DNA from: Schmidtea polychroa
Lineage: Eukaryota
Assembly: GCA_044892525.1 (NCBI GenBank)
Contig: CM097887.1
Coordinates: 86,840,397-86,904,396 of the forward strand
Direction of reading: 5' to 3'
Length of the DNA stretch: 64,000 nt
The translations under genes were made by a program, and so were the position numbers. Below the pieces are notes generated by a model. The model ran no database searches and was not told where the DNA came from. It worked only from the letters and a program-made list of their open reading frames with translations. Of the stretch, positions 8,758 through 15,952 are shown piece after piece; position 1 is the first letter of the stretch; every line of letters starts with the position of its first letter.

Positions 8758-10410
8758 ATGGTGAGTGAATCTTGTGAAATGATTTATTTTTAAAATATTT
8801 TTTAAAATTTTAATCAATTGTGAAAACGTTGATGGAATATTTTATGTAGAAAGAGATCATATCTATAAATATTGGTCAGGCTGGAGTCCAGCTGTCAAAC
8901 GCTGCTTGGGAATTATTTTGCATTGAGCATGGCATTAAAGCGGATGGGTCCATGCATAACATGGTAGAAAATGGTGAATCTGGACAAGATACGTTTTTCC
9001 GACTTTCAGAAACTACTTATGTTCCAAGAGCGGTTTCAGTAGATTTTGAGCCGACGGTCATTGGTAAATTAATATTATATTATGTTTTTAACAATTTGAT
9101 TTTAAGATGAAGTTCGTCTTGGAGCTTATAGGCATTTATTTAATCCAGAACAATTAATTTCTGGCTTTGAAGATTGCGCCAGTAATTTTGCGAGAGGGAA
9201 TTATACGGTTGGGAAATTATTTTTGAAGCCAGTAATGAAGCAGATAATAAAGCAAATTGAAAATTGTGATAGTTTACAAGGGTTCTGTATTCTTAATAGT
9301 TTCGACGGAGGGACAGGGGCTGGTTTTACATCGACTTTGCAGGAAGAATTATCAATGGAATTTGGTAAAAAGCCAAAATTTCAAATTGGAATTTATCCAT
9401 CTAGAAGAATGGCTACAAGTACTGTGTATCCATATAATGCTATTCTCCATACTCATACAACAATGTCTCACACAAATTTAAATACATTAATGGACAATGA
9501 AGCTATTTATGATATTTGTGCTAATAAACTTGGTGTAGATAGGCCAACATACAGCAATATTAATCGAATAATTGTACAATTATTTAGTAGTTTAACCATT
9601 TCAGTACGATCTAGAAATCTTTTGAATAGTGACTTAGATCAATTATGCACCAATCTGGTTCCATATCCTAGAATACATTTTCCTCTTTCACACCTTTCAC
9701 CGTTATTAAACGCATGTAAATCCAGCAAAGAATCAACGGGTATCGGTGATATGACGAGAGATATTTTTGATGCTGAAAATCAACTCGTTCAATGTAATAC
9801 AGCTAATGGAAGGTTTATGGCTTGTGTATTGCAATACCGAGGGCCAATACCACCTACATCTATTAATAAAACTATTTTTGAACTTAAAAGACGAACAGAT
9901 ATAAATTTTGTCGACTGGTGTCCAACGGGATTCAAAATTGGTATTAGCAGCATGCCTTCTGTAAGTCCTCCTGGCAGTGCTTTAGGAGATATGAAAAGAA
10001 CGTTAGCAATGTTATCGAATTCAACCGCTATTGTCGAAACATGGTCTGAATTATTAAAAAAGTTTGATTTATTGTTTTCTAAAAGATCGTTTGTTCATTG
10101 GTTCGTGAGTGAAGGCTTAGAAGAAGGAGAATTTTTAGAAGCCTATCAAAATATTAGATCTCTTGAAAATGATTATGTAGAAATATCTATGTCTTCACAG
10201 GAAATAATGGGCCAAGATAAATCTAGTAAAAGCGATCCGAAAATAATAAGATCAAGTGAACCAACTAGTAAAGTAGATGATTCAAAAAGTACAATTGTAC
10301 AAGAGAAATCTAAAAGTAAAAAATCATCAACTATTTCGAAAAGTATTAAAAGTGGGAACAAGTCACAAAATAATGCATCACCGTTCCACACGGAAATTAT
10401 TAACTATTAA
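8758..10410 (+). CDS. TUBA: Divergent alpha-tubulin (506 aa, 3 exons)
   Basis: Exons 8758-8760 (ATG), 8850-9063 and 9107-10410, with GT-AG introns including the classic alpha-tubulin intron after codon 1. Motifs [70 protein letters not shown]. Confidence 0.95.
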
Positions 10411-10808
10411 TTTTTTGTCAATGGATTAAAATGACCTTCCAAACATGCCATGATTCAAAGAATATGTTTAAAAAGAAACTAATTTTAACTACTAAATTAG
10501 AATTTAATACTATAATGAACTTGCCTTAAATGCATGCTAATCAAATCTTTTGATTAGGTTCTAACTACGATTCTGTCGTGCAAGTTATAGAAATAAATTT
10601 CTATTGTTATTTTTTGATATCAGAAAAATAAAAGTTTTCAGCTTATTTAAATTTCTAAATTTTAATGTAAAGTTGTTTATTTATTTAGAAGTTCATTTCT
10701 TTAATTGTAAAATTTAAATATTAAAATTAATTTTGTAAAAAGCTGAAATTAAGAAATTTCAATAAATAGAATATTTTTATAAATATTTATAAGTTTATTT
10801 AGTTGTAT

Positions 10809-13800
10809 ATGAAAATGGATGATAATGAATCTGAGATAAGTAGTGAAGGAAGTGATTTTATCGCGACGGATGAAATGCTAACTTATGCTTATGATGATGA
10901 AAGTACCATTAATGAAGAAGAAGATGTTGCTGATGAAGATGAAGTTAATAAACTCAAACTTGTAGATTTTAGTTCCATTAAATCAGCCATATTTATTACA
11001 ACGCTAGGAAAGTGATATGCCAATTGAGGAACTACTACGACTTTATGGTTCACGAATTGAACCTAGTGAACAAGATAATGATTCAGTATCAGAAGATTTA
11101 AATTCTGGTTCTAATTTAGAACACAAAGTGAACTTTTTAATCATTGGTTTAATATTAAATTGTTAATAATTACTGTTAGGTCATTTAATAGCTTGCTGTT
11201 TTCCAAATCATAATATAATTTTATTGAATATGACAAAATTAATAAATTTTTAATAATTTATATATTATATTTAGGATACTAAACATTTTATTTACTAGTT
11301 TAATTCATTAATGTATTTACCTCACATTAACCCTCATTTAAAATTTGTTGATAAAAACGAGATGTGCTGAATTGCGCTTAAAGGCATTTTACAGTGAGTA
11401 TATAAAGATACCGAGACGTTAACCACTTAATGACTTCGAATACATGACGCATAATTTTAGAAAGGAAATAATAATAAATAAAAAACTTCAATGACAAATA
11501 TCGTCAGTAGGAACAGTTATGTTATGTAATATATTTAATAGTGCATGCTGGTGGGTTCTTTTAATTCATCCATTTCACAATCAAGTCATGCTTTCAATAT
11601 AACAAACTATATTCACTATTGGTGCAATATATAAGGGAAATCCCAAACAGTAATATACAGGACATTAACCATCTTGATCCCAGAGATTGAAATCAATAAA
11701 TGAAGGAATGCGCTACGTACCTGCTGAAAAAAATGACAAGCAAATCAATAAAAATAACCGAGAGAGGTAGTGAAAAAACATGAAAAAGGACCCAATTATG
11801 ATTAATGTATAAAGAAACAAACAATTTAAAGAAAAACAAGTGTATATAAGACTAATAAGCATTTTAAAGAAGTTCTAACAAGCTTTTTATTATATCATAA
11901 ATGTTGTGAATTAATTACAATGCAATATCACCAAATTTTGAATGTGGCATCAGAGATAAAGTAAAAATTAAAAACTTTTCTATAAATTTGAATTCACGAA
12001 AAAACAGTTGGGATACCTAAAATAATAAATTAAAATAATTATTAAAATGATTGGGGGAAATAAATGAATATAGAAAGGAAGTTTGTTGTAAATCTCGAAT
12101 TGTGAATTGGAAGCAGAGTGAAAGAAAAAATCTTAAAATGAAAACAATATAACAGAAAAACAAATAAAGGCAATTATTAATTCTTACGTATAAATCAAAA
12201 TAGAAGCTAGAAAACTGAAAAACAAATCAATAAAAGAATTTTTCTAATCTAAGTAGTTTGTCTGAGATAATGAAAACATTCAATAGAAAATAAATTGCAA
12301 TCCCTATTAAACTAAAACTCGCCTAATATGGAATATTGTGTTCAGGACTCACTGAAAGCTGATGATGATCAACAGGAAGATTCTTGTAAAGAAGTCAAAG
12401 ATAACAATTTAGAAACATCAGATAACGAAATAGAAAATGAAGCTCCAAGGGGATCGAATCGGTTATGGTGCAAAGCATTGATAGGTGAATTATGATTCGA
12501 TTGTCAATGGTTTGAATTGTCTGTTAAGAAAATAATTCCAATTACAACTCAGAAGACGATGGAGATTATATTCCGATAATTACCTCGAAATTGTACTCGA
12601 ATGCTGTAAGTCATGAATAATCCCTTTTTCTGGAACGGAATTATAATTATATTAAATGCAACAGAAAATCCGAGTTGGGGATAATTATCAAGCTTTTATT
12701 CCTGGAATCAATAACAAAATATCGCAAAATGACATCTGTAGACAATTGAGGCGAAGTGAAATCCTTCAGTGGAAATGTCTCGATGACAGTGAAAATTTTC
12801 AAACCGACTTGAAACGTTATTTGAAACTGTATGGTGAGGTTAGTGGACAAACTGGACTGATTAATGGCAAAATTGACGANNNNNNNNNNNNNNNNNNNNN
12901 NNNNNNNNNNNNNNNNNNNNNNNNNNNNNNNNNNNNNNNNNNNNNNNNNNNNNNNNNNNNNNNNNNNNNNNNNNNNNNNNNNNNNNNNNNNNNNNNNNNN
13001 NNNNNNNNNNNNNNNNNNNNNTTTTATTTAATTTTGTTTTTATTATTATTATTAATATTATAATTTTTTTAAATTTTATTAATAATTATTTTAATTTTAT
13101 TTAATTTTTACTTTTGTTTTTATTATTATAGCTTTTTATTTTTACATTTATTTCATTTTTATTTAATTTTGCTTTTATTATTATTATTAATATTATAATT
13201 TTTTTTAAATTTTATTATTAATTATTTTAACTTTTTATTTTAATTTAATTTTTTTTTATTATTATTTTATTTTTTAAATTATAATTTACTTGTTTAACAT
13301 TTAATTAATGCTGCTTCCAAGAAATCATCACTATATATTTTTATTATTTTTATTTTATAACTTTTTTTACAGTTGTAATTATTTCAAGTAATTTATTATT
13401 TGCTTCACTCGGGGTTTTATCCTTGTTATTGAAATTATTGAAATTACAAATGAATTTGAGAGCGTAATTCTCAGTGAGATAATACTACATGTATACAAAA
13501 ATGCATATATAAATAAAATCTTCTACATAAACTTGGATTGACAATGTTTTTTCAAGCTCAAAGAATAGCCTGACGCAATGAATCAATATTTGTTATATCT
13601 TGGCTTTTATGAATATGTACCTTCATCAAAATCCATATATTTTCTATGTGATTAACGCTGGTCAATTGCACGTTACAATACATTCATTTTAGAGAAAATG
13701 TCGTGTAAGAGTTGGTGTGTGAATTATAGCGCAATCTTGTTGAAATATTGCGTTAGAGTATAGCTTAAGTAACATTCTTTCCAAAAGAGGGATCTATTGT

Positions 13801-14400: not shown

Positions 14401-15952
14401 CATGGACCATCTGATAAGCGCTGTACAGAGTGATACAGTCACACGAGTGTATGTGCTATGTCCCAAAAGTTGTATCTTTATTGTAATTTCAAACAAATAC
14501 ATTTGTCTTTTCTAACAAGTATTTGCACTTTGTATATTCGAGATATTTATATGTGGCTGTCGAGTTGTTCGTCCTGTGATTTAGCAATTGCCTGTAAACT
14601 AAACGAATAATTTGGTAAATTGTTCTGCAAGCGTGGCGTTTTTATATATATTTTAAATAATTTATAAATAAAAGATGTAAACCAATAGATAAGATTATAA
14701 TTTATCAGTTATTAATTTTCTAATTATCAATTTAGAAAATTTTGATTTATATGAATTTTTTACAATTTAAAATAAATTTTAATAATTTTCATTTAAAATT
14801 TACTCTTTTTAATAGGTATTATATTCATAAAATAATGCTTTCATATTTTATATTGACTTTTAAAAGTTTATCTCTAAATATGTAAATTAAATATAAATGA
14901 ACATTTTGATATTCACAATAACCGTTTAACATGAAATTCGTCATCATTATTTACTATTTTTTATTTTCTCGATAACTAGTAAGATTAAATTTGAGTTTTT
15001 GCAATAAATTCTAGATTTTTTCTCATTGTTTCTTCAGAAAATACAAATATTAAATGCTACTATTCCATTCAACATTTTCACACGTGTTTTTTTTTTGACC
15101 CGAACATTTGAATAAAAAATAATTTTTTTTTGAAACTCAAAAAGAAAATCATTAGAACACGAAAATAAGTTTTTATTATTACAATTAAATAACATACAAA
15201 ATAGATTGCTTCTTAAAAAACAGGAAAATATTTTGTAAAGACAATGTAAATTTTATTTTTAAAACTGTATTTTATATTGCTCCGTGCTGCCTCTAAAAGC
15301 TTTTTATTTTCCGCTACCATAGTCCGAAATTTGTCGCATTTTATTTTTAAATAGTTACAAATTAATAATTCGGCTTTAACATGATCAGGCGTTAAACGGT
15401 TCCTTTTATCCCAACACATTGAACCCATTACTGAAAAAATTCGTTCGACAAAGGAATTACTAGGAGAATGCCGAATAAAAATTCCCTTAACTTCCTCAGT
15501 ATTTGCGCACATAATTGTTCTTTGCTTTTTTCGTTGTCGCTGATATATATAGCTAATATAGGATTTAATGAGCATAGCTCGTGAAATAAATCGTCACCTT
15601 GTGATTCGATGTCCACGTTTAGATACGCACTTATTGCAATACAGCCATTAATATTGGGAACACATTGTTTTATATTAAATTTATTAGCATTCTCCAAAAA
15701 TGTATTTACAAAGTCATACCAATCGTATAAGTATTTCAACGCTCTAGCATATACGGTGTCTGCTTCATTTTTAAATCGTATTTTATTGGCATTCAACAGA
15801 AGCGCTAATGATTGATTTACTATAAAACCGTAAAAGTGTTCTTTATTATAATATTATTTTTTGTAACTTTATTATAGAAACGCATAAATTTTGGATTAAA
15901 TAACCCTGTTTAATTTCAAATTTAATACATACTTTACACACACACATACACT

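Follow-up and report, generated by a model that had tools for sequence, protein, structure and literature searches.

Alpha-tubulin carries in its T7 loop and helix H8 a glutamate, Glu254, that completes the E-site GTPase of beta-tubulin. To our knowledge this residue is treated as universally conserved, and its mutation is lethal in yeast. Can a gene in which it has been replaced be a genuine alpha-tubulin kept by selection, and what would its product do in a microtubule? The question is raised by a locus in the planarian Schmidtea polychroa. The locus lies in a 64,000-nucleotide stretch of DNA, here called the window, on contig 3 of an assembly of 781 Mb that includes four large chromosomes and has a G+C content of 28%. 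A sequence-only reading of the window had proposed a GTPase-dead-like isotype with glutamine at the catalytic position.

The gene and its residue 254

The alpha-tubulin-like gene occupies positions 8758–10410 on the + strand and encodes 506 amino acids in three exons with no internal stops (Table 1). Both introns run from GT to AG, the reading frame and splice sites are intact, and the exon layout is that of the canonical alpha paralogs in the same genome; alpha-tubulin genes usually have, as here, a first exon that is just the ATG, with a GT intron after it. Exon 3 matches the Pfam families PF00091 (E 1.2e-29) and PF03953 (E 4.4e-34), so that both tubulin domains are present. Two relatives serve as points of reference below: P0001, the closest, which is 98% identical in the core and is probably the S. 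mediterranea ortholog, and L075, a 75%-identical ortholog with the same three-exon structure on a genomic contig of another planarian sample.

By phmmer against the PDB, exon 3 aligned without gaps to residues 77–447 of mammalian alpha-tubulin (E 2e-129, about 52% identity), and the best 60 matches among all PDB chains were all alpha chains, with E about 1e-129. The alignment runs unbroken through the alpha-specific eight-residue insertion between S9 and S10 (canonical residues 361–368), which beta-tubulin lacks. Within it, glutamine stands opposite E254 and NLLNSD opposite the canonical T7 sequence GALNVD. Translation and alignment together thus bear out the earlier reading on both changes, as the three-exon model does on an intact frame with canonical introns. 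Glutamate is therefore missing from the T7/H8 position at which it would complete the beta E-site GTPase. Ordinary alpha-tubulins had glutamate in all 160 T7/H8 motifs recovered by two homology searches, and every true glutamine case among the hits belonged to the planarian-type group; the few hits with tryptophan, tyrosine or serine at this position proved to be mis-joined gene models.

In trees of alpha- and beta-tubulins only, the split between the two had support of 100/100, and all the divergent genes, this one among them, lay on its alpha side. A placement outside the alpha clade, which the sequence-only reading had allowed for, was not found. Judged by its sequence and its position in the tree, the gene is an alpha-tubulin by descent that lacks the defining catalytic feature of the canonical isotypes.

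The protein departs from canonical alpha-tubulin elsewhere too. Its N-terminus reads MKEI, where the canonical autoregulation motif is MREC. The Lys40 acetylation site is absent, with asparagine in the Lys40 column and an H1–S2 loop three residues shorter. Exon 2 carries the T1 loop motif GQAG and the Asp and Glu of T2. The glycine-rich T4 loop retains its core, G143-G144-T145-G146 and G148; a strict PROSITE-style T4 pattern would presumably fail at its first position. At the other end of the chain, the short acidic tail of canonical alpha-tubulin, which is Glu-rich and the site of tyrosination and glutamylation, is replaced by a basic one. We know of no counterpart to a basic Ser/Lys tail among polymerising alpha-tubulins.

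Downstream of the gene, at window positions 10803–13063 on the + strand, an acidic ORF is followed by one that matches the ELM2 domain weakly (E 0.006, below the cut-off) and reaches an N-gap at 12880–13021. A weak hAT-transposase dimerisation remnant (E 0.003) occurs at 15213–15575 on the − strand.

Table 1. Features of the alpha-tubulin-like gene, in window coordinates.
Feature	Position	Strand	Description
Exon 1	8758–8760	+	ATG start codon alone, then GT intron; same layout in ortholog L075
Intron 1	8761–8849	+	89 nt, GTGAGT...ATGTAG
Exon 2	8850–9063	+	Residues 2–72 and base 1 of codon 73; PF00091, E 1.3e-11
Intron 2	9064–9106	+	43 nt, GTAAAT...TTTAAG; phase 1; position shared with canonical alpha paralogs of the genome
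Exon 3	9107–10410	+	Residues 73–506 and TAA; remaining GTPase domain, tubulin C-terminal domain and tail
T4 nucleotide-binding loop	9304–9324	+	DGGTGAG vs canonical GGGTGSG; changes G142D and S147A
Tyr (TAT) at canonical E183 position	9427–9429	+	T5 loop, N-site ribose contact; lineage-specific, kept in all three orthologs
T7 loop and start of helix H8	9607–9654	+	Canonical residues 243–258; N249, D251 and N258 kept; G246N, A247L and T253D changed
Gln (CAA) at catalytic E254 position	9640–9642	+	Protein residue 251; Gln also in P0001 and L075
C-terminal tail	10189–10407	+	73 residues, Ser/Lys-rich, net charge +5, pI 9.6

Predicted effect of Gln254 on the microtubule lattice

The chemistry of residue 254 is well characterised in other tubulins. 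E254 deprotonates the lytic water, and in the computed mechanism a carboxylate at this position is needed as the direct proton acceptor (PMC10319017). In human tubulin, hydrolysis is lost in E254A and four-fold slower in E254D (PMC7018511). The human alphaE254Q mutant, designed as the 'smallest possible modification', is deficient in hydrolysis. GTP is present in its stable microtubules, which are free of catastrophes and bound by EB3 all along, and E254Q blocks lattice compaction even at 20% of a mixed lattice (PMC11893814). The sequence-only reading had taken E254 to be catalytic, and its substitution to block hydrolysis, from E254A/N work; the human E254Q mutant backs this more strongly.

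By analogy with that mutant, we favour the reading, at a probability of roughly 0.55, that the gene encodes an alpha isotype that is naturally incompetent for hydrolysis, dimerises with beta-tubulin and lends stability to long-lived arrays. The protein would fold as an alpha-tubulin, bind GTP at its own N-site and pair with beta-tubulin. With the proton-accepting Glu254 replaced by glutamine, the GTPase site of beta-tubulin in the next dimer along the protofilament would be left incomplete, and wherever the isotype entered the lattice the neighbouring beta-tubulin would keep its GTP and the lattice would stay expanded and stable. Used pure or mixed with canonical alpha-tubulin, the isotype would thereby serve long-lived arrays as a genetically encoded stabiliser. 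Both the polymerisation of the planarian protein and the transfer to it of the effect established in human tubulin are things we infer; as to where it might be used, sperm cortical microtubules, axonemes and other stable arrays are our guess.

That the protein folds as an alpha-tubulin is certain from its sequence because it is 52% identical to solved structures. Its N-site retains G10, Q11, D69, E71, D98, S140, G143–G146, G148, N206, Y224 and N228. Among longitudinal contacts, the invariant WCPTGFK stretch on S9, N258 and N329 are kept, as are E411, E414, E415 and E417 of the acidic H12 ridge used by motors. These are residues expected of a lattice-forming alpha-tubulin, and we count them in favour of a place in the lattice.

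Pairing was approached by modelling P0001 residues 78–509 with the genome's beta-tubulin (L076:470-1741, residues 20–443) and GTP. The complex gave an ipSAE of 0.66, against 0.00 for the best control; the predictor's familiarity with solved tubulin dimers may account for the 0.66. Of 78 solved complexes 51 attained that mark, as did 2 of 108 mismatched pairs. At least 84% of contacts were shared between runs, the partner pLDDT was at least 82, and the modelled geometry was that of the canonical intradimer interface, with T3, T5 and H11 of alpha against T7 and H8 of beta. What the model shows is likeness to known dimers, not binding.

The product of the window gene carries lineage changes at its own GTP site, N101S (Asn in L075), G142D and E183Y, and H283K in the M-loop, which makes lateral contacts; on this sequence evidence, the canonical lattice might fail to form. 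Alternatively, the gene could encode an alpha-like protein that works outside the lattice, as a cap, a nucleator, a sequestering partner or part of another polymer, with its basic tail serving other interactions. MKEI, the missing K40, G142D, E183Y, H283K and the basic 73-residue tail all fit such a role. So does the overall divergence, about 52% identity to canonical alpha where ordinary isotypes differ by a few percent, and several paralogs lie in very long frames of up to 927 aa. Conservation of the longitudinal contacts and of the motor-binding H12 ridge is, however, hard to explain without a lattice surface, and the predicted dimer geometry is canonical; we regard this explanation as unlikely, though a serious one.

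A role in the lattice need not mean a dead GTPase site. The isotype might instead be a slow, tuned GTPase activator, in which D251, D253 or the glutamine amide positions the water. D251 is kept, the window gene, P0001 and L075 all have T253D, Toxoplasma alpha3 has an acid shifted to 253 beside His254 (PMC10056924), and human E254D is merely four-fold slower (PMC7018511). Human E254Q is nevertheless hydrolysis-deficient with D251 intact (PMC11893814), which makes residual catalysis by glutamine less likely, and the computed mechanism wants its carboxylate at 254 (PMC10319017). As for D253, to which the sequence-only reading had drawn attention, it occurs in only about 7 of the 20 other members of the Gln-254 clade described below and so is not a clade-wide compensation; conceivably, to judge from the alignment, it could supply an acid in the window gene and its orthologs. 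Slow activation seems to us somewhat less probable again than a role outside the lattice.

Conservation, expression and the wider family

Over a 433-codon core, comparison with L075 gave pN 0.11 and pS 0.86 (saturated), with 80% amino acid identity; the tails are only 30% identical, the ortholog tail sharing composition but not sequence with that of the window gene. By these measures, the core is under strong purifying selection. The codon for glutamine is CAA in the window gene and CAG in L075. Among 20 further clade members, position 254 is Gln in 18 and His in 2, the codons across the clade being CAA (13), CAG (4) and CAT or CAC (2). The position is among about 90 of 433 columns that are at least 90% conserved, in paralogs only 43–51% identical to the window gene.

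These comparisons weigh heavily against a silent or decaying duplicate without function. A very large family in which a few members carry stops, and a window gene seen in no listed run recorded as RNA, would suit that idea. Against it, frame and splice sites are intact, pN in the core is low beside a saturated pS and the critical codon differs only synonymously; we think a silent duplicate very improbable. An assembly or sequencing error at the glutamine codon, which the sequence-only reading had named as a danger and for which we found no point in favour, is scarcely credible, the same residue being present in P0001, in L075 with its synonymous codon and in 16 further genome paralogs, and all sampled 31-mers of the stretch (100%) being present in four runs of two samples, possibly including the source sample. 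On the sequence evidence, error and pseudogene decay are both effectively excluded. No exact match to the exon-3 ORF was found in public contigs.

None of the listed sequencing runs that contain the stretch is recorded as RNA. Of the sampled words, fractions of 0.59 and 0.25 occur in small S. polychroa runs guessed to be RNA, and 0.17 in each of twelve runs of a second organism; as a hint only, these values would fit transcripts of the window gene and of a diverged ortholog. In Dugesia ryukyuensis, transcripts of alpha-tubulin, beta-tubulin and CCT3 that are specific to the testis rank among the strongest genes of sexual worms, and the same transcripts are said to be testis-expressed in S. mediterranea too (PMC6467871). 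These D. ryukyuensis tubulins cannot be tied to the Gln-254 clade.

A six-frame search of the genome with exon 3 returned at least 99 tubulin matches, of which 74 loci were fetched and the residue aligned to E254 was read. The genome holds about 65 alpha-type loci. Some 25 of these are canonical copies with glutamate at 254, many of them in a tandem array. About 40 are intact divergent alpha-like genes, which carry Gln (17), Val (10), Asp (4), His (2) or Ser, Ala, Ile or Leu at this position, some keeping Glu; a few members of the tubulin family carry stops. The array itself (L014–L023) consists of two blocks of identical copies, at C3:106.36-106.45 Mb and C3:106.92-107.01 Mb, about 564 kb apart and alike in order and orientation, which points to a recent segmental duplication or else to a duplication made in assembly. 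Several alpha-like paralogs, including C1:135068473-135069750, C3:20120070-20121272, C3:74464193-74465401 and C3:67442587-67443810, sit in open frames of 752–927 aa, which suggests tubulin domains with long extensions.

Beta-tubulin is not similarly expanded, with about 15 loci, mostly canonical, and lysine at the position aligned to 254. Beside about 11 canonical copies stand divergent beta-like loci at C1:224818593, C2:58698128, C1:21834573 and C2:45678861 (64%, 64%, 52% and 45% identity to canonical beta, respectively), one of them lying about 76 kb away from L025, an alpha paralog with Gln-254. It is possible that they are dedicated partners of the divergent alphas.

Within the alpha side of the tree, the window gene groups with P0001, then with P0005 and L075, then with the paralog L004 (support 100/98). 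They belong to a Gln-254 clade of 19 genome paralogs, with His in one two-gene subclade, and their orthologs. Support for this clade was 99 (SH-aLRT) when sampling was confined to the genome itself, 90 when it was broadened and 86/88 (UFBoot/SH-aLRT) in a careful search, which is good but not decisive. A second clade, supported at 100/100, holds 11 intact paralogs with Val, Ala or Ile at 254 (for example L031, L038, L039, L043, L044, L048, L049, L050 and L052 with Val, L053 with Ala and L055 with Ile), in which N329 has become Tyr, Phe or His. The 77 residues by which P0001 extends further at its N-terminus are absent from the window and seem to be an artefact of the gene model.

The proposal of a GTPase-dead-like isotype stands in part: the gene is intact, belongs to the alpha clade and has glutamine fixed, and human E254Q strengthens the inference drawn from this. 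The gene is not a lone case, being one of about 19 Gln/His-254 paralogs, and from its sequence relationships it is best described as a member of a large, selected family of planarian alpha paralogs without Glu254.

Departures from Glu254 extend beyond planarians. When 1.84 billion cluster representatives were searched with a profile, the best 150 included about 35 further alpha-like representatives without Glu254; those that carry a name are Fasciolopsis buskii (Gln), Sparganum proliferum (Gln), Paragonimus westermani (Ala) and Toxoplasma alpha3 (His). We considered a single flatworm-wide origin of Gln254 and rejected it, the trematode and cestode Gln-254 proteins lying outside the planarian clade. 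At least nine changes between Glu and other residues are required on the tree, the deep backbone of which is poorly supported. Taken together, these two results indicate that Glu254 was lost repeatedly in flatworm alpha-like genes. In Schistocephalus solidus (P0033) and Fasciola gigantica (P0123), public gene models fuse a canonical alpha to a divergent alpha-like tubulin, which suggests that the two are adjacent genes in parasitic flatworms; the second copy in F. gigantica P0123 retains Glu254.

Comparison with known systems and significance

Human TUBA1B E254Q has the same substitution at the same position, with D251 retained as in the window gene (PMC11893814). Apart from that change the human protein is wild type: its tail is acidic, T253 is present and the N-site is intact. 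The planarian protein differs from it at about 48% of positions, occurs in nature and is under selection. Coccidian alpha3 has Thr251, His or Gln254, an extended tail and a modified N-terminus, and has been proposed to act weakly or not at all as a GAP (PMC10056924). Like the window gene, it is a natural alpha-tubulin without E254, with a long C-terminal tail and a changed N-terminal motif; unlike the window gene, which keeps D251, it has lost that residue to threonine, and it is a single gene per genome, whereas the planarian genes are a radiation of dozens. In our trees Toxoplasma alpha3 (P0288) fell on a long branch outside the flatworm groups rather than as an ortholog, and the planarian loss of Glu254 is, by this placement, independent of it.

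Two proteins already on record share the Gln-254 clade: Q7Z1L8 (P0129) from S. polychroa and A7M6D9 (P0126) from D. ryukyuensis. Neither is the window gene itself: both are its paralogs, at 47% and 45% identity, respectively. Q7Z1L8 is identical at 394 of 394 residues to the genome paralog L010 and was reportedly published in 2003 as a divergent alpha-tubulin. We found no open literature linking planarian tubulins with residue 254. Within the dimer itself there is a natural example of a non-acid at this position: Lys254 of beta-tubulin faces the N-site GTP, and that GTP is never hydrolysed. There, beta faces the GTP of alpha within the dimer; in the window gene, alpha faces the exchangeable GTP of beta between dimers.

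Alpha-tubulins without E254 were already known in coccidians. What sets the planarian case apart is that the replacement is exactly glutamine, that it is fixed over a radiation of about 19 genes (with histidine in two), that D251 is kept and that all this occurs in an animal. As far as we know, GTP-lattice microtubules have been studied only through analogues and engineered mutants, the latest being E254Q. About 19 selected Gln/His-254 paralogs, together with 11 hydrophobic-254 ones, would amount to a natural experiment on hydrolysis-dead tubulin, in animals routinely studied by RNAi, in situ hybridisation and single-cell atlases. If our reading is true, they would also supply naturally optimised E254Q tubulins for structural work, could explain how flatworms build their very stable arrays, and would bear on the multi-tubulin hypothesis, as isotypes that differ in core enzymology, beyond their tails.

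More tentatively, planarians, and flatworms at large, may have evolved a whole repertoire of hydrolysis-incompetent alphas, with Gln, His, Val, Ala or Ile at 254, and assemble mosaic GTP lattices in which the ratio of isotypes, rather than MAPs, sets lifetime and spacing; we hold this to be possible but doubtful. Were it so, the strict retention of glutamine in one clade would mean that the amide is still structural at the interdimer nucleotide pocket.
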